From NCBI GenBank assembly GCA_047495785.1, contig JBLDXI010000021.1:62001-126000 (forward strand): a stretch of DNA of 64,000 nt, written 5' to 3'. Below the pieces are notes generated by a model that saw nothing but the letters and a program-made list of their open reading frames with translations, ran no database searches and was not told the origin of the DNA. This document shows positions 5,273-54,545 of the stretch, in pieces. Source of the stretch: Lepidodermella squamata. Taxonomy: Eukaryota; Animalia; Gastrotricha. Every line of letters begins with the position of its first letter. The stretch's first letter is position 1. A program made the position numbers and the translations under genes.

Positions 5273-6025
5273 TTAAATTTCAATATGGTCGAAAGGCGCC
5301 GTTTCGAACGGCATTAGGCCGAAGGTTTCCGGCTTGAAATCAGCCAATGTCGGTAGAACTAGGACTTTTTCATCGATCGAAGCCAGTTGACTAGCTGATT
5401 GGTGCGAGTAAGTCGTCGGAATCGTCGGCACCCAGACGCAGTTCATGCCCGCTGCGAGCGCGCCCTGGACACCCATGACGGCGTCCTCAAATACCAAGCA
5501 ATTGCTGTAGCCACGAGGCGCGGTTTCAAATCGATCAGCAGCGGCGAGGTAAATATCAGGCGCTGGTTTGCCGTTAACAACGCTTGGATCGTTGCTCAAT
5601 ACCACGTGGCTGAAGAATTTGTCGAAAAAATCGCGGTGTCTTGTTATTTTACAGCTGTAAGATTGAGAATCCGAGCTCGTCGCGATTGCCATTGGTATTT
5701 TATTCCTATAAAAATGTTCGACCAGCTGCTCAGCTCCTGGCATAAAATCAGCTGTCGGGAGTAGTTGATTCAATTCCTGGCGAGTTTTCGAATTAATTTC
5801 GTCAACGCTGAGGGGTAGTTGGAATTTTTGCTGTAGCAGGGTCAGCGCCTTAATTCGGGGCCGTCCCATCATTTGTTCCTTGGTAGCGTTGTCGAAGTGT
5901 TTGCCGACGGTACTACGGCACAGATTATCGAATACATGAGTGTAGAATGGCTCGGTGTTCAGCAGAAGGCCGTCGAGGTCGAAAATAGCGTGGGTCACCA
6001 CCGATTTTTTATCACCGAGAGACAT
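5273..6025 (-). CDS. PUDP: HAD-superfamily hydrolase, pseudouridine-5'-phosphatase (HDHD1/PUDP/GS1-like), intronless
   Basis: Motif I 'THAIFDLDGLLLNTE', motif II 'AIATSS', 'GKPAPDIYL', 'CLVFEDAVMGV', C-terminal 'FKPETFGL'. Confidence 0.88.
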   Translation of the reverse strand: MSLGDKKSVVTHAIFDLDGLLLNTEPFYTHVFDNLCRSTVGKHFDNATKEQMMGRPRIKALTLLQQKFQLPLSVDEINSKTRQELNQLLPTADFMPGAEQLVEHFYRNKIPMAIATSSDSQSYSCKITRHRDFFDKFFSHVVLSNDPSVVNGKPAPDIYLAAADRFETAPRGYSNCLVFEDAVMGVQGALAAGMNCVWVPTIPTTYSHQSASQLASIDEKVLVLPTLADFKPETFGLMPFETAPFDHIEI

Positions 6026-10252: not shown

Positions 10253-13200
10253 TCATTCAACGCCGCTGTTCGACTGCGAGTTCTCAGTCACATCAATGGC
10301 CATAATTTCGAGCGTAGTTGCCGGCATGTCCACCGCCGGGTCGCAAATGATCGCCGCAACGGCCGATTCCGCCTCCTCATCGTCCATCTCATCGTTATTA
10401 TTTTTCGCCGCCTCGCTGTCGACGTCAACCTTGTGCACGTTACGCTTGTGCCGCTTCAGCCGGTACATGTTCGCAAACGTCGACGTACACAAATCGCAGC
10501 CGTATTTGTTCGGCTTCGGAGAGCTGGACCGCGGCCGGGATGACTTTTTAGCCGACGATGATTTTTTCGACGAATTCGGCGGCGCTTTTTCGGCGAGACG
10601 GGTGACGGGCCCGGGCGCTGCCTCGGCGCCCTGCTGTTGGCTCGCAGCTGCAGCAGCTGCGGCGGCGGCAGCAGCGATTGCTCCCGGTTTTCGGTGGCAC
10701 TTTTGGTTGTGTTTTCGGACGCCCGATTTCGAATGAAATGGCCGGTTGCAGACGCCGCATTTGAACGGCAGGTCCTCGCGGCCGTGGCCTGACAGGCGTT
10801 GGTGGTGGAGTAGCGACTCGGGTGTCTGGTAGCCCTTGTTGCAGATCGAACACACGTGATCAAGCGACCCGGCTGAGCTGACTCGCTTCGGACTAGGACT
10901 TTTATTTTTGCTGGATTGAGGAAGTAAAGAAAAGATTGAGATTAGATTTGAGAATAGAACTTCCCGAAAATGGCACCCTCCTCGGGAAATAAGGAAGGAG
11001 ACCCAGGAGCCCCATTAAATTCCCCAAAATTGACATCCAGCACTAACTTAAAACCAAATAAATTTGATCTTTTCGATTTTTCTCAATATCCTCGATCCTC
11101 GATTCATATTATCTAACCTAAATAATCGCTCGATGAGGAGTTACCCCCTCGCCGTTTGCCAAACCAGCAAAAATATTTCAGTAATTTTTCCTAGATAAAT
11201 TCTGAGGATATTTCCAAATAAAATCGGAGGCAGATGAGTTGTATACTCATTCGATAAGAATCCTCCTGTAACCGGAACCTAATTTTCTGCAGCGGAACCA
11301 AATTTCGGAATATTTATTGGGCCTGAAACCACTTTTCAGAACTTTTCAGAGCATCGAAATTCTAAATAAATTATTTTTAAATTCAGCATTAAATTCAATG
11401 AAAGATTCAGCATTAAGACCCAGTTCATTTTATGGATCATAGATAGTCACGAATTCTCAGAATTATCAGAAAATCAACATTTGGAACATTTCGAATTAGG
11501 TTCCGCTCACCTTAAATTTGGTTACTATTTGGCTATTGGTTTTTTGGCAAAAATATATTCTAATTCGGTTAGTGATGGTAGTTTCCGTTTCGTCCGAGTT
11601 TTGTTTTGTTCCATTAAATGCAAATTATAATTCGAAATGTAATTTGCAAATCGAAAGCGATAAGCAGTTTCAAGTACTGAGACCGCTCAACCGAGCACCC
11701 AGAAACTTTGCCAGAAATTGGAGAAATTCAGGGTTCTAGGTTCAGGTGACAAAAAAATCGAAATCCATTATCATTTCAAAAATTCAATGCTGGAATGTCA
11801 ATTTTAAGGCCAAACATTTATTAAGACCCAGTATCCACTTTTGCATTAATTGATTCATCAAGAGAGGTAGAGAAGTAGTGGGGAGAAAAATCTGCCATTT
11901 TTTAAGTTTTCGAGGAGGATGAGGAGGACACCCAATATGAGCACCCGTTCACCGTAACCACTCACCCTTTGAGAGGCCGCTTCGGCGAGGCATTCGGGTG
12001 ATTCTGCTTCAGATGCTGCTCGAGTTCGGCAGCAGAAAGGCACAAAACCATGCAGTGCTCACAGCTGAACACGGCGAAAGAATCAGCAGCAGCAGCTCGG
12101 TCAGGCGACGACGTTTCCGCGCCGACGCCACCATCGCGCGAATCGGCCGCCGAATCAGCGCCACCCGGCCCGATCGTGATTTCATTAGGTTCGCCCAACA
12201 CGTCAGAAATCAACGCCCGCTCCTCCTCCTCGTTCATCTCCATTAGTATGGACGCATTCGGCAGCGCTGGCACGAGCTCGGTCGAAGACAAGGCGCGAGG
12301 CGAGCCGAGATCAAGGCTCGTGTGAATCGACACGGGCAGGTCCTCGTCCTCGTCGAGATCATCGTCATCAGACCGAGTGTCCTCATTATTGTTATTATTA
12401 TTATTACTACTACTCCCCGCCGCGTCCTTGTCCGCCTTCTCAGCATTCGAATGCTCCGCTTTGCGGTGCTTTTTCAAAAAATACTTGTTCTTAAACACCT
12501 GCCCGCATAGCCGGCAGGGCGACTGCGGGTGCACGGTCCGTTTATGCTCGGCCAGGTTCGATTTCTCAATAAAACCCTTGTTACAAGTCCGGCAGACGAA
12601 CCGCCTCAACGGCTGGCCTTCGACTTCTTCATCCCGCTTCTGGTGCTCGGCAATCATAGTCTCAGTTAGCACGCCGAATTTATCCTCATGCTTCGTATCC
12701 AACATGTGAGACGCGAAATGAAACGCTCGAATGAACATGGCGTAGCAAGTGCCGCAGATAAACGCCTTTTGGTCAGCATGCGACTCCTTCACATGCTCGC
12801 AGAGATCTTCGCCGGTCTGGAAATGCAACCGACACCCCTCGATGATGCATACGTGCTTCTTGCGGCCTTTCGAAGCGGACGACGACGATTTTTCAACGAC
12901 GATTTCTTTCGGTTTCCGGCCGCGTTTCGCCTTAACCGGCGCCGGCTGTTGCGCTGCGGGCGGCGGATCAGCAACCACCTGTTGCTGCGGTTTCGCGTAC
13001 TCCGGAATCCAAGCACCGTTATCGATTTGTTCAGATTTCGCCTCTTGCAACTCGACGCCTTCCACCTTAACAATACGCCCTACTCGTTTGTTGTGCCGGT
13101 TAACGAGGGTGGCTGAGACGGGCGAGCGGGATGGCAGGTTGAACTGGTCGTCAGCAGCTAGGCCCCTCGGCGGTATTGCGACCAAATGCGCCAGGGCTGA

Positions 13201-15045
13201 TCTCGATAGCGCGAAACCGCCCTGGTAGCGATTCGCAGCCGATGGCGTGGTCGAGTTATTAACAGCAGTTAGCGAGGAATTGTGGTGATGGCTCGGGTCG
13301 TTGCTAGGCCGGAGGTTTTGCGATAGTTGCGGGCTCTGGTGCTGGTGTGGCAACTGCAGGCCCTGCGCCCGTAGCACCGTCGGGTTGTTCACGTGCGCCA
13401 TGTCCATGTGCCGCAGGTACACCTCCTGCGACGGGAATTCGATGTGGAATGGGCAACTGCGGCAGATGTACCGTTTCACGTCTTCATGTGGCGCCGAGTC
13501 GTTTTTGCTTGCATCGCCGGTTGTTGCTGATGACGATGAGACGGCTTCTTCTTCAACACGACTGCGTTTCGCCGTGGTTTCTACGACAGATACGCTGGGG
13601 TATCGCGGCGCTGGGAGGGCTGCTGTTGAGGAGGAAGTGGACGAGGAGGTAGACGCCGATTGCACTTGAGCAGGCCGGAAGGTGGAAGGAGCCGAGACAC
13701 GTCTGAAAAAATTGAAAAATCCAACTTAAAATAATCGAAGATATAGTTTTGCATTTAGTATATAACCCCCAAATTCAAACCAAATTTTAGACCTGAAATA
13801 TTCTTTCAAACTTTTGCACATATTTTTGCACCCCTCAGCATGCTGATCCGATTCTGTTCCTGAAGGCTCTTCTAGTCCGAGTTCTGCCTCGGCTGCTTAG
13901 CTCAAGTTCCTGTCTGAGTTCTGCCCTCTTGGCTCTTGTACAACTTAGTAACAATTGCCTCAGAGAGTTGCATCAGATCCAGGCGGAGGCGTTGCATTCA
14001 AATTTTCCCAATTTCGAACAGTTTGTCAGCATCTTCTCCCGGATGTCTCGAGTAATGAAGATCCTTATGACAATAGGTCGGTTCTCACTTCATAAGTATT
14101 TCGATGATATTACGGGCTCCTAGGGACTGGCTTCACATACTCAAGCCAGTTGAAGAGACTTCACCAGTCGGAGGTGAAACAGGGATTTCTTATGACGGGG
14201 TATACGATGATGAAGCGATGACCAATTTCTGGGAACGTTGGGCGCGAGGCTTTTATGGCTTGAGAGCATGGCGAGAGCGACTACGACGAAGCAGCCATGA
14301 GGGTTACAATTCCACCTTCGGACCAAATTCTGCATGCGAATTTATCGTCATCTTCGACATCAAATCATTCCGAATTGGAGAATCGACCTGAGGCTAAACG
14401 AGGTGTTTCACAGCCTGTTCCACGAAGAGCCGTGACGGTGAATATTGGACCTATCATCGCGCCATTATCAGACCTAGTCACTGGCTGGGTGAGTTCTAAC
14501 CGATTTAAAGTTGAACGAAAAATCCCAGGATTTTATCACTTAGCCATTCAGACCGAAAACGTACATAAAAACTAATCTGTCTGAAACTACAAAAACCGCG
14601 TCAATTGAAGCGTGCCGCTCTATGCCCTCACCAATGCTTCTTTGTAAAGAGCAAGAATATTATCAAATCAGCTTATTTCTGATGAACTTATTACCCTTTC
14701 CTTGATGTAATGCCCGAAGTCATTCTATTTCTATATTTCAAATTTGAGTTTCTAAACCAAAAGTTACAAAGACGTAATAGACATCTTCCCGTTTTCGCTT
14801 TTACCTAGCTACTTTTTACTATTTTCAAAGTTCAACATTTCTGAAATTTTTATATTGTATCCATATAAATTTCAAAACATCTTCAAGTTTTCGTTTGTGT
14901 TTGTTTTCGTTTTTCTTTTTGTAGAAATTAGGTAAAATAAAAAATAAAAATTAATCATCAGAAAAACATACGTTACGTTAGTGAGAATGCGGACATTGAC
15001 AGGTCGAAGTGGCGGCTGCCCACCGCCACCGGAATTGCCGATCAT
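10253..15045 (-). CDS. ZF1: multi-C2H2 zinc-finger protein (family member); exons 15045-14972, 13702-11966, 10910-10253
   Basis: Signature finger YICRSCPFHIEFPSQEVYLRHMDMAH, further C2H2 fingers, AT-hook-like KRGRKPK, poly-N and poly-A tracts; two in-frame phase-2 introns. Confidence 0.85.
13860..14100 (-). mobile_element. Decayed non-LTR retrotransposon (CR1/L2/L1-type) ORF1 remnant in ZF1 intron 1
   Basis: Minus-strand translation 'SENRPIVIRIFITRDIREKMLTNCSKLGK...WI*...RAKRAELRQEL' resembles the RPI(I/V)VRF...R..IL....KL...I..DL....R..R..L..EL pattern of LINE ORF1; contains an in-frame stop. Confidence 0.5.
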
Positions 15046-15297: not shown

Positions 15298-18188
15298 TCA
15301 ATAAAGATAAAGTGGAGGCGGCCCATCGTCCGCATTCTCCACAGGCAGAGGCGCACTTTCGAGCGCCTCCTCGGCTACAGGCTGCTCCGACGCCTCAACG
15401 GCCATCTCACCAGGTGATTCAGTAGTGTCCTCCGGATCCTGTACAGTTCGATCATTGCCATTGTTACTGACATCTTCATTACTTTTAGGCAGATTTTTCG
15501 ATTTAACAACGTCAGGATGCGTAGCGAGCAAATGAGATTTTAAGGCGGCTCGATCGCCGCAAACCTCGCCACAGTGCCAACAATTGTTGCGTAGTTTCGC
15601 ATGGTACAAACCCAAATGTGAATTCAGCGTCCGTTGCTCATGAAAAATATCGCCGCAAAAGCCGCATTTATGCGTCATTTCACCCGGCCGGCACCGGCCA
15701 GCTTTCACATGGGTTCGAAAACCCGTTTGATAGGTAAACGCTTTCAAGCACCTGACGAAAAAAATGCAAAAAATTAACCGAAAAAACAACGGAAAAATAG
15801 GACAAACTTGTTGCATTTGTACCGTTTCCGGCCCGCGTGTCGATCCAAGTGTTCCTTCAATTGTAGCCTTGTGTTCAAAATTCGGTTGCAGATGTGGCAA
15901 GTATAATCGCCACGCGCATTTGTCAGTTCCGCCGGTTCGTCCTTAAACGCCGTCACGACATATCGAGGTTTATTTTCAGAGTCTGGTTTTGATTTTGCTA
16001 CATTTTCATTTTTTCTAGAAATATAAAACATTTAATGCGATTATATAAGGAAGATTTTTCGACAAACTTTTTTCGATCCCCTTCGCCGAGATGAAACGCT
16101 TTAACGTGGGATACTAGACTTTTCGACCTGTCAAACGAGGCATGGCAAAACTGGCATTTAATCGGCAGTTCGCCCTTCTTGCCATGACTCATCGACTTGT
16201 GCTTTATCAGCGAGTTGCTATTCGAGAAGGACATTGAGCACAGGGCGCACTTGAACGGCCGAACTTCAACGTGCGAGAATTCGTGCGCGCGAACTGTTTT
16301 TTGATGCGCGAAAAGCTGCCCGCAAATTCGGCACGCATATTTACGCCCCTCTTCACCGCCCATATTGACAACAAGCGGCGCCCAAGAATTCACGTCGAAA
16401 CTTCCGTCAGATGACGTGCCAGGATTTGACTCGCCCATCTTATCCCGATGGGCGGTTTGTTTATGGTGGAGAAGTGTTAACGTAAAACCGAAAGACAAGT
16501 CGCAAAAATCGCATTTATATTTCGTCAAATTATCAAAATCGATTGGCTCAGCAGTGTTGGCAGTTTGCTTCGCGGCCAAGCTTGAACACGTCTTTTTCTG
16601 GTGTAAATTGAACCCACTCAGCGTTGTGAACATCGTCGCGCAAAGCGGGCAGCAAAACAGGTCGTTATTATGAGCTTTTTCGATATGTTGCTGCAGAATC
16701 GGGATGGATGAGAATCGTATATCATCACATCCGTCGACTATGCAACGTAAATTATGGCTAGAGTCCATGTGGCTCGACAGTTCTGGCTCGCTTGAAAACG
16801 CTGATTTGCAGTATTTACACAGCAGATAGCAGTCGAGGTGTTTCATCAGCGATTGATGCAATTGAAGGCCGCGTTGAGATTGGAAGGTCGCTTTGCATTT
16901 GTCGCAAGTGAATATCGTTGAAGAATCATCAGTCGAAGGCTTATTGTTATTGCTAGCATTCGAAGACCGCGGCGTGGTTTTATTAGGAAGAGCTATGCCT
17001 GATGTTTGTACAACACTCGGATTTAGCAAATGAGCAAGGTCCATGTGGCGTAGATACACGGCTTCATTCGGGAATTCGACGCGGAATGGGCAGCTTTCGC
17101 ATATCCACTTCTTCTCCGGCTTCACGTTGATTTCAGATGGAGTCATGCGTGGATGGTGAGCTTCGAATCGCGATTTTTTCGACGACTCAACATTTTCGCT
17201 TGGATATTTCGGCGTGACTGACTGAGATTTACGCTGGCCGTCAATTCTCATCGCAGCTGCCTCGTCGTTATTTGATTCCTCATTATTACTAGAGAGAATT
17301 AGAGAAAAACAATTATTATTTTACAAATTTCAAGACGGATCTCTAAAAATATAACAAAACTAATGTGAACGGATCAAAAAGGCCAATTTGACGGAAATCT
17401 TAATCGACTATGAATGTTATCAACTAAAATATTAATCCGGAAGAGTTTGATGAAACCAGGAAAAATACCGAAAATTACCCAACCAATTACCATCGGGTTT
17501 TTCTTCATTTTCCCGTGTAATTATAACTTTTTCACACAATTTCAAATTTCAAAAATCTTAAATCTCCTTGAAAGCTTGAGCAACTAAAACATTTCAACAA
17601 ATTTTTTAAGGCGAACTTACCAGCAACAAGAGCAATTAACGTGATCGTGAGCTTCAGCGGGTTCCGCCTTGATAAAGACGGCTTCTGAAGGCTGGGAAAA
17701 TCCAGTTGGGGACCGCATTTGAGGTGGATTTGTTGTGGTCAAGCGCTGAAGCACCGGCATAGTAGCAATATCATCATCGAATGGCGCCTGGATCTGAGTT
17801 TCACGATTTGCAACAGTTTCTTCGCTCGATTTTTCAGATTCTTGTCTATCCTGGCTATCAGAGTCACCCGAACCTTCAGCATTACTGCAAATAAATTAAA
17901 ATTGAAAATTGAAAAATTGAAAAGTTCGAAATTAAAAATATACCGTTCTAGAAAAGCATCGACATCATCGCAAGAAACCAGTGTGTTAGTTCGAATAGAT
18001 CTCGGCAAAATGCCTTGCTCTTGCATTTGCACTCGCTGATTCGTTGAAAGAGCAAAGTAAGTAGTATTGCTGCCGAACATTTCACGCAAACTTTTGTGGC
18101 CATGAGTTTTGAAGGCCTTGATAAGGCACGACTCCGGGTACCATTCGCGCCCGTTAATCGGGACGCGTACGACGCCAACAAGCGGCAT
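15298..18188 (-). CDS. ZF2: winged-helix-like N-terminal domain + multi-C2H2 protein; exons ~18188-17944, 17884-17621, 17288-16068, 16014-15808, 15751-15298
   Basis: Exon 1 is homologous to the exon at 41680-41930; 'FIKAEP'; signature WICESCPFRVEFPNEAVYLRHMDLAH; more than 10 fingers; four phase-2 introns. Confidence 0.85.
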
Positions 18189-36354: not shown

Positions 36355-38710
36355 TTATTTTGTACATGATTGTGAAAGTTTGGAAAGTTTTGAGCTTGGA
36401 AACGAACATTCCGATAAATGCGCCTCTAGACTTCCGAGTTGGAAAAACACCTCGTCACACATTTTGCAGGAGAAATGCGGTTTTGGAAGCAATTTTTTCG
36501 GCTTCAATCCGTGTTCAGCAGCTTCGTGCATTGAGAGCACAACATCCGTTAGGAATTCCTCATCGCAAATTGCGCAACCGAAAAATTCGGACTGCAAAAT
36601 TTTATCCGTAGTTTTTGCGGCTCGCGGCTTGAGCCGGCGAGTCCTTATGTAACTAGCGCCATGCAAAACGCTTTCTTCTTCGAAAGCGACCTTCTCGCAA
36701 TCAGCGAGATGTTCATCGAAATCTTCCAGAGAAAACGACCACGCGCTACATTTCGGGCAAATAAACGCCCCAGATTCGTGACGAATCTCAATATGACTCA
36801 ATAAATGAGCGTCTGATCGCAGAATGGCGCTACAGCCTTTGAACTGGCATTTCACGGCATCACTCGATATTTTCTTCAACTGATGGTATTTCATTAAATG
36901 GCAGTCCAGTGCTTTCCGAGTGAGAAAATGAACGTCTTTCGGACAAATATCGCAATGAAACGTTGCGAAATTGTGACAGCTGTCCTCTCGATGCGACGCT
37001 AGCTCTTCGAAATCCTCGAATTCCATCTCGCAAATCGGGCAATTGAGTAAATCGATCTCAGATTCGAAATATTGTGCATCCACGCTTTTATCACCGTTAC
37101 ATTCGAAATCAATGTGGTCAGATAGACCAGCGATGTCTACAAACATTTCCGGGCACTTTGTGCAGATGAAAGCGGCCTTGCAATGCCATTGTTCTACATG
37201 GCATTCGAACGATCTTCTGGTACGACAAATCGACTCGCAGCCAGGTACAACGCAAATAAATTGCTGATCCGAACTTGAAGCGATGTGATTAGGATGAGCC
37301 GCTTTCATATGATCATCAAGTAGTGAATTCGAAGTCTTCGAGATGCCGCATAAACTGCAGATATAATTGTTGTAATCGTGACGTGTCCTCGTTTTATGCG
37401 CGCCAAGAGCTGGGAAAGTTGTGCGACGCACGAAGCACACTTTGCATACAAATAAATCTTTGATTGATCGCTCAACTTTAGATGGAGCGTTGCAAACATG
37501 GAGCGGTCCGTGAACGCCCAACGACTGTTCAAAACAATGTTTACAGACGAAAAGCGATCCTGGGTGCCACTCATTAGCATGAGAAACTAATTTCAAGCCA
37601 TGCGCGAAAATCGATTGACAGCCTTCAATGCGGCACACGATTTGAGGTAGACCTTTAACTGAAATATTTGAATGCTTCGAAATCACGTGTTCCATTAAGT
37701 CCTCTTCTTTCAACGCTACAAAAAGGCAGTCGTTTGAAGGACAGTGGTAAGATTTGTACTGATGACCCCACGCAACTCGATGAGCCTGGAACGATTTGAA
37801 ATTGTCGAAATTTTGAAGAGTATCCGTGAAAGACGAGTGGCAGATTTTGCAAAACATGTGAGGTTTGACTGGGGCGGTGATTGTACATGAGCTGCCAATA
37901 GCCCTAGGGTGGGCAACACACAAATGCCGCATGTAGATGTCGTGGGTTGGAAATTCAACCGGAAATGGGCATAAATGGCAGACAGGCTTCGTTTCCACTC
38001 GGATGAGCGGCTCTTCGCTTTCCAGTTTCGGCTCAACTGCGTAGCAATCATCATCACAGCTGCACGTGCACTCCTCCTTAATTTTAATATCTGTAGCCGG
38101 GTAACATCTGTGTGAGAAAAAAACAGTTTTAGGACCCTGACGAATTACGAATATTAATCTAGGATTCTAGCCCTTTATTAGAAGCTCCAGCACTAAATTT
38201 CCCCAAAATATGGTTTTTCAATATCGTACCGATTATGCCTATTTTGCGCTCAGTTCTCAAGCCTACTGAGTCGATATCGATTTTATAAATCAGTGATTTT
38301 TCCGATATTGCAAGTCTTGAAAGCGAACATAGAATAATTGTCTACGTACTAGGTGGCCTAAATAAAAGACCCTTGGAAGATGGGCAGTATCATTATCAAA
38401 AATAGCAGAAATCGAAAAATCGAAAAATTAGCGGTGAAAATATTTAGAACTTGAAAATCACCTGTTAGTTCTTGCCTCGGGCTCCACCACCACCGGCTCA
38501 GTTTTCCAAACAACAGAAGGGGTTTTTCTAAAAAAGCGGCAAAATACATACAGGCATTAATTGACTCAATTGAAAATTTACCGAGCTATTGGCACGAAAA
38601 CGAACGGCACGAACGACTGTGATGAGCCCGGAATGTTACTGAAATTAAAATTTACGTTTGCATTGAAATAAAATTGCGATAATTTACCTGCTCTTTCTCT
38701 TTGCTGCCAT
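36355..38710 (-). CDS. ZF10: family zinc-finger protein
   Basis: ATG 38710; 'PFVFVPIAR', 'WKTEPVVVE', 'IKIKEECTC'; signature VCHLCPFPVEFPTHDIYMRHLCVAHP. Confidence 0.86.
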
Positions 38711-38867
38711 TATTCCATGCCTAGGAAGTTAGCATTACAGACATCAACAATTAAAGATCTAAGAACAAAACGCTCGAATTATTGAAAATATTCAGATTTT
38801 TATTGAAAAAAACGTGATTAATAGACGTTGGTTAAAATGAAATAAAGAGAAGTCGAAGCACGGTCAA

Positions 38868-41800
38868 TCAAGCCGAGTCCCAAACCAGCAAGTTCTCAAT
38901 GTGAATCGGTTCTTCCTCGCCCGGCGCGCTGAGAGCCGCGAATGGGTCAGTTTCGACCGGGCAGTTATCCGGCCGATGGTACGCGGCGACGTGCGCGTCA
39001 AATTCGAGCCGGTTGTCGAAAACACTGGCGCAGGAATGGCACGGAAATTTGTAGATTCGCGTCGTCGGTCGCGGGACAGATTTGCCAATCGGGCGGTTTT
39101 TCGCACACGATTTTCGCGCCACGTGAGCTCGATAGGCCTGCCACCATTTGAAGCGCATTCCACAGGTATCGCACCTGAAAATTTTACAAAGCGCCCGGGT
39201 GCCGCGTTTCCGGCTATCCTGAGACCCAGGCAACTGGACGGAGTGGAAGTTCAACAGGTGTTTGCTCAGAATCTCTTTTTTCTTGAAAATGTTGCTGCAA
39301 ATCAAGCACCGATATTTGAAATCAGTCGGGTCGCACGGCTTCTTCTCGTGGTCTAGCAATTCGCTCTTCTTCCAGTAGTACTTGCCACAACGCGAACAAC
39401 GATATGAGCCTTTCGCGACCTTTGCACCATGAGCAGTTGTCGAGTGTTGTTTCAATAAATGCTTATTCGCAAAAACTTTCGAGCAAATTTCACAGCCATA
39501 GTCAAAGCCACAGCTTTTCTTGCAGTGATTCACCAAATGGGTGTTATTCGAGTAGCAACGGCCACATTTCGAACATTCAAACTCGGATTTCGCGTCTGAC
39601 GGTATCGGTTGACCCGGATGAGCGTCTCTCATGTGCTGCGACAGCTTATTCCGAATTTTGAAGACTTGCGAGCAAATTGAACAGTGAAATTTGTAATCAT
39701 CAGGATTGCACGGCTTCTCGCAATGGCGCAGTAATTGCGTTTCATACGAGAAAATTTTGCCGCAGATATTACACGGAAATCGAGCGCCTGTTTCGACCAT
39801 CGAATGGCGCTTATCCATATGCATGACAAGGGCAGTGTTGCTCTTGAAAACGTTTGAGCAAACCTTGCAAGTGAAATTGTAGTCAGATCTCGAGCAAGGG
39901 AATCGTCGATGTAAATTGAGCTGTTTCCGCTGGCCGAACGATTTCCCGCAATTTCTCGGGCATTCGTAACGCTGAACGCCGGAATGTTTGTCCAAATGTT
40001 CGTTATACGTTGTATAAGTGCTGAAAACTTTGCCGCAAAGTGGGCAAGTCTTGAGGCGCTTTGGAGCCGCAATTGGCTTAATGCCAATATGTGACAACTC
40101 GTGATTTCGCATCGAAAATCGACTCGCTAAAGAGTGATTGCAAATCCGACAGACACAAACTGGTGCACCATCCAATTTCGCGATAAACGGTTTCCATTTG
40201 TTCTCCTGTAAAAACGATTCGGTCACCTCAGCGATATCATAATTCTCCGGGTGGGAAATGTAGCGATGATGCAGAAACAAGACCGGATCAGTAAATTCGT
40301 TAGCATCCGTGCAGAATTCGCAAAGGAATTTGTTTATTACAATAGGCTTCTCCGTCGCTAGTTTCCGCGGCTTTCGCAAATCTTCTGCACGATTGGATCT
40401 CGAAGGGCCAGGGCACGACGATTTCATGTGAACAGCTAGACCTTTCTTCAATCGAAACATCGAGTAGCAAATATTACATGCAAAGGCTGATTTTTTGTGC
40501 CACTTCGCCACGTGCAGGCAAAGCGCTTTCCCATTTCGGAAAACCGCTCTACATCCGTCAACAATGCATATGTGCTGAACTTTAGAAGGTACAGGTTTTG
40601 TGTCAGCATGGTAAGTTGCCATGTGTCGATCCAACTCAGCCTCGGAGAGTGCCATGTCCCAACAAACTTCACAAAATTGGCATGCATAGTTATGCTTCCG
40701 CTCAATTTGATGAGCATGCAACGCTTCGAAAGAGTTAAAAAGATGCCCGCATATTTTACATTCCAACATATTTATGTTCACAACCCGTTGCCGGCGATAT
40801 TGCTGTGGCGCGGTTGACGACATTTGCATAGCAGGTCGCTCCACAACAATTCCATGGCCTCCGTGCCACTTTTTCGCGTGAGCAACTAGCTGATCATTCC
40901 GACGGAAAACAAATCCGCAGCCCTCAAAGGCACAAGGAAACCTATCCGGGCTCGATACTTGCTCATGCGAAGTGGCAATGTGGTAATCAAGGTCAGGGTC
41001 ATGAATGGCGATGAATGAGCAAAATTCGCATTGAAACGACGAATACAAGTGTTTAGCTTGAACACGATGAGATTGAAATGCTTCGAATGAGCTACGTGAA
41101 ACGAGGCACATTTTACACACGAGCCAGTGGGCAGTCGATGAAATTTCATTGCTGGGCAGTTGCCTTGATGGGATGGAGACGGTATTTGGGGCTAGCCCAG
41201 ATCGATCAATCACCACTACACCTTGCGCTCTGTAAGGCTGTGGATTGAACGGATGTGCCGTATCCATATGTCTAGCATAACTGTCTTCGTCGGGAAATTC
41301 AATGAGAAAAGGACAGCTTTCGCAAACATAGCAACCGGTAACATTTGATTGCTTCGATGAGGATGGCTGATTTTCACTTGAAAAATATCACCACAGATGA
41401 ATGCCAGTCAATTTATAATAAACAACCTACCTCGAGCTGGAAATCATCCCGTTTTGAAGCGCATTCGACTTGCGTTTGCCATCTGAGTCCGGGCTGTCAC
41501 AGATATACTTGCAATTGAATTTCGCAAATCACCAACACCTTACCCTGCAGACTGCACCAAGTGAGCATTGCCCCCAACAACGATTACAGAACTACCAGTA
41601 TCGACTGCTTCTTGCTGGAGTTTACTGAGATAGTAAATGACTCGGGTGAATATAACCAGTAGCATTAGCAATTTCTTACGCTTCGTTCAGGACAGCATCA
41701 ACGTCTTCACACAACACTAAAACCGTCAACCATTTAGTGTAAGACGGCGGCAGATTTGCACTTCGGACGATCCGCTCCCTTTGATGTTCAGATAAAGCAA

Positions 41801-41930
41801 AATAACGGAAATGTAGATATTTGGCTTTGAAGTCCTTCTGAGAAGTGCAGTTGAGCAGCTGGCAAGCTTCCTTTACACTGTAATACTCCTTTCCATCGTC
41901 CTCCAACAGAATTCTTCTAATAGGTGGCAT
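38868..41930 (-). CDS. ZF11: winged-helix-like N-terminal domain + ~20-finger zinc-finger protein; 5'-most family member
   Basis: Exon 1 41930-41680 'LLEDDGKEYYSVKE...CEDVDAVL'; three phase-2 introns; signature YVCESCPFLIEFPDEDSYARHMDTAHP; ORF 38868-41267. Confidence 0.88.
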
Positions 41931-42781
41931 CAACCAAGTGATAAATATCTATATGAAACCTAAGATTTTAATTCAAGTCGATGAAAATCAAGAGGTACTA
42001 AATGTACGATATGATACGATAAGAATGCTATGCTAGAAAATGAAAAGCATAAACGACGTACACCGTATAACATTTATCTTTGGAAATCCAGTAAAAAAAA
42101 GACTAATGCAAATTTTTAAAATGGGAAAATTCTGATCACGTGTTAACCTAGCATGAACAAAAAGTGTAATTAAAATCTAAAATTGCCTTAGCTGACCACG
42201 AACTCAAAATATTTGACATGAGCAGAACGATCGGCGACTGTAGGTTAGAAAGAACAGACACACCTTTACGCCCTTCGACCAAACATAGACGTCAGAAAGA
42301 GGCCATTAGCGAACCGGTGTCGCGAGTCACATCTAAGATTTACTACCGCAGGATTTGAGGCCGGAGGCAGCCAGCCAAAAACCGCACCTGTCAACAAAAA
42401 ATTGTACCGCGGAAACCAATGAAAAGCCCGTTCAAAAAAATTCGCTCGGGCGCGAGATTTTGCCAGATATTGCATATTTATACTAAAAATAATATCTTTG
42501 CAAAGAAAATATATATTCATGGAAATATTGTGATATTTTGTAAGCAACTGTACTAGTTTGCCGCATGAGAAAAATTTGAATAATTTTCCTCTTTTTTTCT
42601 CGAGTTTTGGGTTTCAGGGTTTCAGGCATCACGAGAAACGGTCAAAGCGCTCAGCGTGACTTGGATCATGGTCATTATTCTAGCATTTTGACTCAGTGGA
42701 TATCCACAATCCACGAATTACCATAATCATCGAATTAAAGACCACGATGATGCCGATGTGCCGATGCCGATGATGCCCGTG

Positions 42782-52017: not shown

Positions 52018-54073
52018 CTACTTCTTCCTTGCGAATGCGTAATCGACGAGAGCAGCAGTAACGTCGGTATCGTTCGATTCGACAGTTAGGCGAACCGTCG
52101 GTGGGCATGACTCATAGTCAGTAACATCAACAGCGACGACGTTGTCCGTAACGAGGCGCTTGAATTCGTCGATCGAAGCTTGAGGCCACGTTTCAGATCT
52201 ACCCGGAGGCGCAACACCCGCCAATTGAGCAATAGCACCCTGAACCGGCCAATTTGCGAGCTTGGCATCGAAGGCCCGCATGTTTTCGGGAATCGGATTT
52301 TGAACGGTGATCACATTGCCGTAGTCGATGAGCAAAACCTCGGGATTTTTACCAGGATAGGCGACAGCAGCTCTGTACCAGGATCCATCTAACAACAGAT
52401 GCAGAGATTAAAAATACCGAAAAAATTTAAAATTGGTTTATCTAGGGACAATTTGTTGATTAAAATTTACCTGTAAATCGCACCACACAAAGCTCGCCTT
52501 CAACCAGCTTCGTAGCATCGAAAATGCGTTTCGATTTCTTGTCGGTGACGTACCGCTGAATCGCATCCATCAGGTCTTGAGATTCGTGGATCACAACGTA
52601 GAATTCATCCGGTGTAACAACGTGAACGACCTGACCCCGCAAATTCGGCTCGTGAAAATCCGCAGACGCAATCGAATTGATGGTAATGACTTCGCCGGAA
52701 CTGCTCGACGCCGAAGACGTTGGCGAGGGTGTGATTTCACCGGTATGATACGGCGAATTTGTCACGGCCGCGATTTCAGCATCCACCTTAAACGTAACGC
52801 TCTTCGGGTTATTGCCATTGCTGTTGTTCGAATTGAATGAGTCATCGACGATTTCCGTAGCTTTCAAAATCGAAGAAGGCGGGCGCGGTTCAGGCTTTGT
52901 GATTTGAATTTTCGGAGGCGAAGCGGCCCGCACAGGCGCAGTAGGTTCCGGCTGTTGGCTCATGAATGAATCATCGACGAAGCCCTTCAACTTTTTAGGA
53001 GGAACAGACAGTGTGTTCGGGATCGGCCTGTTGCTGTTGTTGTTGTTGATGAGATTGCCCGAAGTGACGCGGATCGGTTGGAAATTAGCCGGCTGCCGGT
53101 TAGCGCTGTCATTCGAGTCGAACGAGCCGAGATCTTCATTCGGCGAGGATGAGCGCGGGAAACCAGTGTCTTTCATCAGACCCAAACTATCACGAGCCTG
53201 GTAGCCTAGATTCGACCCGAAACCGCCTCGACCGCTGCCCCGAGCCGGGGCGCCTCGAAAACCGGAACCTCGGAAATTCCCACGACCAGCTGGTCTGCGA
53301 TTCTCAACCCCGGAATTCCACCGATTCTCCTGACCCTGGTTGTGGCGAGTTTGAGGGGCGGCCGGGTGTGGTAGAAGGCCCGATCGCTGTTGATTCGCAG
53401 TTTGCTTCCCGCCGAACTGGAACAACGACGGGTCATTCAACCGAGCTCGAATCGAAGAACTACTCGAAGATTCGAACGGATTTTTGATCGAACGCTGCGA
53501 CTCGTTGTAGCTGAAATCGCGATCGTTATCCCCCCACCGGTCCATAGCCGACTGAGGCCGGAAATTTTGATTTTCAGACGGGCCCCAATAGTCATCGCGG
53601 CGCCGTTCAGCTCGGTAATCTTCGGTCGGTTCTTCGTAAATCCGCTCGCTATGCACGAAAGCAGCAGCTGAGCAGGGTCGCATCATTTCAGCTTGTTCCT
53701 GCTCGGCGCGGTAATTTCTAACATAGGCAGGCGGGACAGCCGGGTAACCGGGCGGGGCGACAGACGGCGGCGAGTTGTAGTAGACCTGGCCGGGCGGGTA
53801 GGCTGGGTAGGGTGGGTAATAGGCGACACTCGGATGAGGCACTTGGACCGGGGTGCCGGCAACACTTCCGACCCGGGCGGCGGTTGAGACTTCGCTAAGT
53901 TTAGCTCGCAAAAATTCAATTTCCGATTGCTGTTTTTCGACGATTTTCTCGAGGCGGTCCAGTTTGTTATCAGACGGAACGGGCGCGTGTTCGTAAGGCA
54001 TAACGCCGACTGAGTACCTTTGATGAGCGCGGTATGGACCCTCGACAGACGTCTTCATAGGTGAGTAAGGCAT
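52018..54073 (-). CDS. Extended-Tudor (SN-Tudor) domain protein with Pro/Tyr-rich and RG-rich disordered N-terminus
   Basis: 'VVHVVTPDEFYV', 'GELCVVRFT|DGSWYRA...IDYGN', 'LAGVAP...W...F..LV'; RG repeat GRGNFRGSGFRGAPARGSGRGG; one phase-1 intron ~52389-52470. Confidence 0.88.
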
Positions 54074-54545
54074 TTTGAATCAAATGAAAAAAACAACGCT
54101 AAAATAAAAAACTCCAGCTTAAAATTATGTTCGCCAATCGTTTTTTTTTATCATCGAAAATTGAAAAGGCCTAAAACCACGATTCACATAGAAGATCGAA
54201 AAGAGCGATGAGGTCAAAACACAAACAGCATATTTACAAACGAAACAACCAGTGTTAAAAGAGTTCATCAACAGAATTCATCCAGTCCAACGTGCGAGAG
54301 TATACGCCGTGATTGAGCTGAATTTTCGTTACCGGCCAGGGATAAAATTGCGATTCTTTGCGCGAGACGATACGGCGAGCATTTGTTAGCGTGTTTCAGC
54401 CTGACGTGTTGAGCAAGTACCGAAATCGAGTCACAAATCGCTGAGCAACAATCACATTGAAAAGTAGTCGCAATTCGCTTTGCATAGGAACGTGGCGGTT
54501 TTTTGAAGTAAAACTAGAAAAAAAATAAAAATTTAACGTAAAATT

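Follow-up and report, generated by a model that had tools for sequence, protein, structure and literature searches.

Which domain opens the zinc-finger gene ZF11 of the gastrotrich Lepidodermella squamata, and what would such a domain do at the head of an array of C2H2 fingers? ZF11 is one of ten zinc-finger genes arranged head to tail along the minus strand, from ~16000 to 41930, of a 64,000-nucleotide stretch of contig JBLDXI010000021.1 (assembly GCA_047495785.1, positions 62,001 to 126,000 of the forward strand; hereafter the window, in whose own coordinates all positions are given). An earlier reading of the letters, made without database searches (hereafter the sequence-only reading), had compared its first exon to the winged helix of SMARCB1/INI1 and PHF10. 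We consider it probable, with moderate confidence, that a diverged SWI/SNF-type winged helix forms the first exon of ZF11 and of its paralogue ZF2, and that ZF11 encodes a three-part, transcription-factor-like protein.

Exon 1 of ZF11 is real and expressed, and stands at the front of its gene, ahead of about 20 fingers. The minus-strand open reading frame (ORF) 41676-41933 translates as (L)MPPIRRILLEDDGKEYYSVKEACQLLNCTSQKDFKAKYLHFRYFALSEHQRERIVRSANLPPSYTKWLTVLVLCEDVDAVLNEA followed by a stop (an 85-codon peptide), and the string that the sequence-only reading had quoted for exon 1 corresponds to residues 3-81 of this translation. The start ATG occupies 41930-41928, with an in-frame TAG 21 nt upstream, and the donor GC/GTAAGA closes the exon at 41680. 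Two public runs were mapped on 38400-42700, X2, which is DNA, and X1, which is RNA-like in that it has no coverage upstream of 42000, whereas X2 keeps a depth of ~112. A single X1 contig (depth 28.4) covers exon 1 from 41680 to 41917 and carries the three joints listed in Table 1, all of them with CT..AC ends, that is GT..AG introns on the minus strand; X2 is collinear through the stretch that is spliced in X1. Joining the four exons yields a coding sequence of 2904 nt and 967 aa, in frame and with one terminal stop, in which 20 C2H2-like motifs were counted by regular expression. The finger exon is recognised by Pfam as zf-C2H2_4 (E 2e-31, 14 stretches) and zf-C2H2 (E 3e-26, 12 stretches), and its tandem CX2-4CX12HX3-5H units place ZF11 among the C2H2 poly-zinc-finger proteins. 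RNA depth falls across 38688-38831, around the AATAAA that follows the stop codon. The proposal that exon 1 heads some 20 C2H2 fingers is therefore borne out by the RNA-spliced 967-aa frame and its 20 motifs, except that the connection is not direct: two micro-exons (81 and 63 nt), absent from the sequence-only reading, intervene and provide most of a linker of ~65 residues.

We modelled the exon-1 domain with AlphaFold2. The single-sequence model was poor (predicted local distance difference test, pLDDT, of 56), with the order b-b-a-a-(b)-a-a-(b)-a (b, strand; a, helix), and the best model from an alignment of the two paralogues reached a pLDDT of 87 and a predicted template modelling (TM) score of 0.71, with strands (E) and helices (H) at E6-9, E14-18, H19-25, H31-37, E43-45, H48-57, H64-67, E70-73 and H74-81. 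In the INI1 winged helix, the wing loop holds an additional helix that ordinary winged helices lack, a feature common to PHF10/BAF45a (Allen 2015), and the order of elements in the predicted ZF11 model agrees with the published description of INI1, except for alpha5, which is absent because the exon ends. A Foldseek search of this model against the PDB returned the INI1 winged helix 5AJ1 as top match (TM 0.76, root-mean-square deviation (rmsd) 2.5 A), followed by SMARCB1 chains of cryo-electron microscopy entries of BAF and PBAF, the PUFD domain of BCOR, and SKI/SnoN. Among the AlphaFold models of Swiss-Prot, the top eight were RSC7, PHF10 of five vertebrates, and Snf59 and Rsc7 of S. pombe, after which came SMARCB1 orthologues (TM 0.75-0.78) and then Drosophila SAYP. 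Fold clusters of the AlphaFold database and the ESM Atlas gave PF08624, PF21459 with SNF5, and PF21459 with PHD (TM 0.72-0.81). On whole-domain superposition, the predicted model scored clearly higher on the solved INI1 winged helix than on other folds. These matches make it likely, as far as a predicted model can tell, that ZF11 exon 1 adopts the variant winged-helix fold of the INI1/SAY/CRC type.

The families that share this fold differ from ZF11 in what surrounds it. In SMARCB1/INI1/BAF47 (PF21459; 5AJ1, 6LTH chain M), the domain stands at the extreme N-terminus, as in ZF11, but ZF11 has a shorter flexible loop between alpha3 and beta4 (INI1 11-101 is covered by 82 residues of the model) and no alpha5, the last helix of INI1, and its domain leads into C2H2 fingers instead of SNF5 repeats. 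The SAY winged helix of PHF10/BAF45a/SAYP belongs to the same fold family (TM 0.69-0.72 over 78-79 residues in rat, mouse, human, frog, fish and an Atlas cluster; 17-18% identity between PHF10 and ZF11) and scores slightly below SMARCB1 and Rsc7; it is internal in PHF10 (~76-150) and followed by the Req helix and two PHD fingers, whereas that of ZF11 is N-terminal. In the AlphaFold database and ESM Atlas, Foldseek gave its best E-values and TM scores for the CRC domain (PF08624) of the fungal proteins Rsc7/Npl6, Swp82 and Snf59, with TM 0.75-0.81 (RSC7, E 5e-3 and TM 0.77; Snf59 cluster, TM 0.81). CRC proteins are fungal, however, carry the domain internally and are body subunits of SWI/SNF or RSC without zinc-finger arrays, while ZF11 comes from an animal; neither exon matches PF08624 and the host is not a fungus, which sets them apart from the Rsc7/Swp82 family proper. 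Neither SNF5 repeats nor tandem PHD fingers, which would mark a SWI/SNF subunit, were seen downstream in ZF11, where the linker and 20 C2H2 fingers follow.

A direct comparison of sequences gave a register for these alignments. We used as INI1 query a segment of 33 residues that exactly matches SMARCB1 residues 16-48 in 6LTH chain M, and BLASTP aligned the ZF11 exon to it with 16.9 bits, E 0.005 (for a single comparison) and 8/21 identities (RILLEDDGKEYYSVKEACQLL). This match puts ZF11 R6 on SMARCB1 K16, an offset of 10 that is also the register of the structural alignments (ZF11 1-82 on INI1 11-101).

The same variant superfold, with a helix in the wing, is found in the DHD of SKI/SnoN/DACH and the PUFD of BCOR/BCORL1, which are protein-docking modules of chromatin and corepressor complexes, and a domain of this type would make ZF11 a corepressor or PRC1.1-like recruiter with no specific link to SWI/SNF. 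We regard this as improbable, since SMARCB1 scores 2-3 Z units above DHD and PUFD at an rmsd of 2.2-2.6 A versus 3.4-4.0 A, the best matches in the AlphaFold database and Atlas are all SWI/SNF or RSC subunits (TM 0.69-0.81, against 0.55-0.61 for SKI and BCOR), and the local sequence match is to INI1.

To sequence searches, the exon-1 domain presents itself as an orphan, and several results weigh against the SWI/SNF-type reading. The Pfam families PF21459 (INI1_DNA-bd) and PF08624 (CRC_subunit) were not matched by the ZF11 or ZF2 exon at E ≤ 10; phmmer and hmmsearch against all PDB sequences did not list SMARCB1 chains at E ≤ 10; and a two-copy HMMER profile searched against 1.84 billion representative proteins had a sole match, P0001, which was spurious. 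The protein collections searched contain neither this genome nor its near relatives, nor ZF11 itself. The sole sequence signal was the 21-residue BLASTP match to INI1. The ZF2 exon gave no BLASTP similarity to the INI1 segment and lacks the LEDDG motif, so that LEDDG is not under constraint in this domain. At offset 10, most of the INI1-invariant residues (P14, S30, R37, R40, P48, R53, T56, E59) are not retained in ZF11. As to the model itself, its alignment held two sequences only and the AlphaFold2 training set included 5AJ1, and the five models had pLDDT values of 87, 86, 71, 64 and 42, three of them thus clearly worse (42-71) than the best.

The fold could on these grounds be a modelling artefact, in which AlphaFold2, given an alignment of depth two, forced a small, generic alpha/beta sequence into a memorised PDB fold, the exon then being a lineage-specific orphan domain unrelated to SWI/SNF subunits. 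The spread of the five models, the poor single-sequence model, the lack of a homologue among the 1.84 billion representatives and Foldseek E-values of just 0.003-0.2 fit such an explanation, which we nevertheless judge improbable: the same order of secondary-structure elements was already present in the single-sequence run, whose local 3Di string ranks PUFD and SMARCB1 within the top 12 PDB chains; the independent, sequence-only alignment yields the same register; and the paralogues conserve two hydrophobic core blocks, YFALS and LVxCxDVDAxL, which in the model occupy beta3 and beta4-alpha4. It is very improbable that a viral or mobile-element DNA-binding module (KilA-N/Bro-N/ORF6N, or a helix-turn-helix (HTH) of the excisionase or MerR type) was captured and resembles SMARCB1 merely through a shared superfold, as ORF6N (TM 0.67) and Bro-N (TM 0.54-0.61) score below the SWI/SNF families (0.72-0.81) in the fold clusters and Atlas, and the better match to KilA-N or BRO, or to nothing, that the sequence-only reading had named as its refutation was not seen; an ESM Atlas feature search gave clusters of small phage and bacterial excisionase, Cox and DUF3173 proteins, a lead for the HTH core only. 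Of the likeness to SMARCB1 and PHF10 that had been proposed, the predicted fold has held, with INI1, PHF10 and RSC7 as best Foldseek matches, and the profile match and most of the residues have not. That the domain descends from a common ancestor with the winged helix of SWI/SNF subunits is, in our estimate, moderately likely.

Other hits from these searches were rejected. P0001 (E 1e-10) is a translated tandem repeat of 733 aa, with about ten copies of a unit of ~64 residues, for which nine weak repeat matches had been summed; whole-sequence E-values mislead on repeats of this kind. A 19-residue repeat match of the ZF2 exon to designer PPR proteins, summed over many repeats, was likewise an artefact. 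Sub-threshold Pfam matches of both exons (HTH_17, E 0.019; NES_C_h; SdpA) and a PHROGs match to phrog_668, an 'HTH DNA binding protein' family (E 0.026), were not accepted as evidence, and the matches of the single ZF11 sequence to ribosomal L29/L35 and PTP1B in the PDB (phmmer, E ~1) were considered noise. The two-sequence profile also found the winged-helix SarA homologue 1p4x (E 0.0044, per-domain 0.8), on the block corresponding to FRYFALSEHQRERI of ZF11, which we take as a generic resemblance of wing plus helix. Among 5.8 billion proteins, the ZF11 finger exon matched nothing closer than generic zinc-finger proteins, with identities of ≤ 31%.

We compared the two copies with SMARCB1 residue by residue at offset 10, a register that BLASTP supports for ZF11 residues 6-26 only and that is extrapolated from the ranges of the structural alignments further on. 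G23, an aromatic residue at Y26 and a basic residue at K45 are kept in both ZF11 and ZF2. From the list of INI1 invariant or DNA-contact residues (P14, S30, E31, R37, R40, K45, R46, P48, R52, R53, T56, E59), ZF11 retains E31, K45 and R52, and ZF2 retains S30 and carries K27, also basic, in place of R37 and R in place of K45, the others being different. A shift of the register by one residue would put ZF11 S47 on T56.

The second copy, the first exon of ZF2, shares 24 invariant positions with that of ZF11 in a pairwise alignment, concentrated in YFALSxxQR and LVxCxDVDAxL. Its donor is in phase 2, like that of ZF11, and lies one codon off the aligned position; a 59-nt intron and a 264-nt linker exon are predicted to continue it in frame into a finger exon that starts at 17288. 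No third winged-helix-like copy was found in the window with tblastn and HMM (hidden Markov model) searches of the ZF11 and ZF2 copies, so this exon occurs in two of the ten family members, the other eight of which begin with short micro-exons. Across 16001-41387, all ten share a nearly fixed first finger, CxSCPFxVEFPxxxIYxRHxDxAHP (in ZF11, CESCPFLIEFP..YARHMDTAH), the other fingers being far less conserved. ZF3-ZF10 are mutually close (204-760 bits) and include ZF7, ZF8 and ZF9, a recent subgroup at 606-760 bits. ZF11 stands further off (134-225 bits), and ZF2 furthest of all, with ZF11 as its best partner (100 bits). The winged-helix exon may be ancestral to the family and have been lost once, or may have been gained once in an ancestor of ZF2 and ZF11.

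Table 1. Positions of the features described for ZF11, ZF2 and ZF10, in window coordinates
Feature	Position	Strand	Basis and remarks
ZF11 exon 1, coding part	41680..41930	minus	ORF/translation and RNA contig; 83 codons + 2 nt; ATG 41930; encodes the winged-helix-like domain (aa 1-82)
ZF11 intron 1	41625..41679	minus	55 nt, GTAAGA..CAG, phase 2; RNA joint 41624/41680
ZF11 exon 2	41544..41624	minus	81-nt micro-exon KLQQEAVDTGSSVIVVGGNAHLVQSAG, hydrophobic VIVV stretch; RNA joints on both sides
ZF11 intron 2	41494..41543	minus	50 nt, GTAAGG..CAG; RNA joint 41493/41544
ZF11 exon 3	41431..41493	minus	63-nt micro-exon PDSDGKRKSNALQNGMISSS, basic KRK patch; RNA joints
ZF11 intron 3	41377..41430	minus	54 nt, GTAGGT..AAG; RNA joint 41376/41431
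ZF11 exon 4, finger array	38868..41376	minus	Pfam, regular-expression count, RNA coverage; stop TGA 38870-38868
AATAAA, likely ZF11 poly(A) signal	38799..38804	minus	Sequence; 64 nt past the stop, ~90 nt before the ZF10 ATG
ZF2 winged-helix-like first exon	17944..18188	minus	tblastn E 1e-5; HMM 154 bits; 30% identity to ZF11
Predicted ZF2 linker exon	17621-17884	minus	VFIKAEP (SUMO-consensus-like) and VNCSCC, as in ZF3-ZF10
ZF10 5' end	38528-38710	minus	ATG 38710, MAAKRKS, then two micro-exons; introns RNA-confirmed

Several observations concern the linkers and the spacing of the genes. The linker exons of ZF11 are without motifs of the VFIKAEP/VNCSCC type and have SSVIVVG and DGKRKS instead. 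In ZF10, the RNA joints define introns at 38687-38639 (49 nt) and 38581-38528 (54 nt), the micro-exons encode a hydrophobic SFVPFVFVPIA and WKTEP (psi-KxE, SUMO-consensus-like), and an IKEECTC motif opens the finger exon. From the ZF11 stop (38868) to the ATG of the next gene downstream, ZF10 (38710), there are just 157 nt, a very compact, operon-like packing on the same strand; a 3-codon upstream ORF, ATGGAATAA (38718-38710, minus strand), shares one base with the ZF10 start codon. All introns observed are 49-55 nt long.

Elsewhere in the window, a single-exon gene for a pseudouridine-5'-phosphatase (HAD) lies at 5276-6025 on the minus strand, its best named relatives being tardigrades (Paramacrobiotus 49%, Ramazzottius 46%) and then assorted animals. 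The window's only GC-rich blocks (0.53-0.54 versus ~0.41) hold two long minus-strand ORFs, at 11965-13725 (587 codons, with 5 finger motifs and low-complexity Ser-rich stretches) and 52463-54079 (539 codons). Rfam and tRNA scans of the window gave no matches.

How might the parts of such a protein work together? KRAB, ZAD, SCAN and BTB are N-terminal effector or oligomerisation modules that head C2H2 arrays, and they resemble the ZF11 exon in layout, as small N-terminal non-finger exons in tandemly expanded zinc-finger families, although their folds are unrelated to it. By analogy, the finger array would bind DNA sequence-specifically and the winged helix, placed as these modules are, would be an N-terminal effector or adaptor that most likely docks a protein partner in the chromatin machinery. 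Docking has precedents in the SMARCB1 winged helix, which docks on ARM5 of ARID1A in BAF, and in the PUFD-PCGF1 complexes among the structural matches of the ZF11 model. In PBAF, SMARCB1 touches nucleosomal DNA with a basic cluster of R37, R40, K45, R46, R52 and R53 (PMC9741621). ZF11 is basic at two of these six positions (K45 and R52, in the extrapolated register) and ZF2 at those of R37 and K45, and because most of the basic contact positions are lost we favour protein docking and consider high-affinity DNA contact by the ZF11 winged helix less likely. Accessory, low-specificity contact with DNA or the nucleosome is possible, because in the putative recognition helix K32 is invariant in both copies and position 35 stays basic. 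The recruitment or mimicry of BAF/PBAF that the sequence-only reading proposed is compatible with the data but doubtful. In that case the ZF11 and ZF2 winged helices would have kept docking of the ARID1A ARM5 type, and the two proteins would insert themselves into the SWI/SNF scaffold, or compete for it, and recruit or block complexes of the BAF/PBAF kind at the target sites of their fingers.

We then considered whether the combination is new. A PSI-BLAST search from the INI1 winged helix gave only INI1 homologues and BAF45a (Allen 2015), and SAY and CRC domains are reported only in SMARCG subunits (Hernandez-Garcia et al. 2022, PMC9170682). In the literature consulted, the INI1/SAY/CRC winged helix is described only from subunits of the SWI/SNF family. 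A full-text literature search on the Pfam and InterPro identifiers of the domain returned no papers, and none of the structural matches in the AlphaFold database and Atlas is named as a zinc-finger protein. The remark of the sequence-only reading that no family was known to join this domain to ~20 C2H2 fingers agrees with the literature and with these names, with the qualification that the identity of the domain rests on a predicted fold. As far as these sources go, a winged helix joined to a C2H2 array would be a new architecture, a known fold placed in a setting not described before, in two genes of a single poorly sampled animal genome.

Expanding zinc-finger families often capture domains, and this case would extend the short list of their N-terminal modules (KRAB, ZAD, SCAN, BTB). 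The domain was missed by Pfam and HMMER and recovered via structure prediction only, and surveys of architectures based on profiles would miss such cases. The role of the SMARCB1 winged helix is debated between DNA contact in PBAF and ARID1A docking in BAF; if the reading is true, a copy carried on a sequence-specific finger array would be a natural experiment on the role of this domain in isolation.

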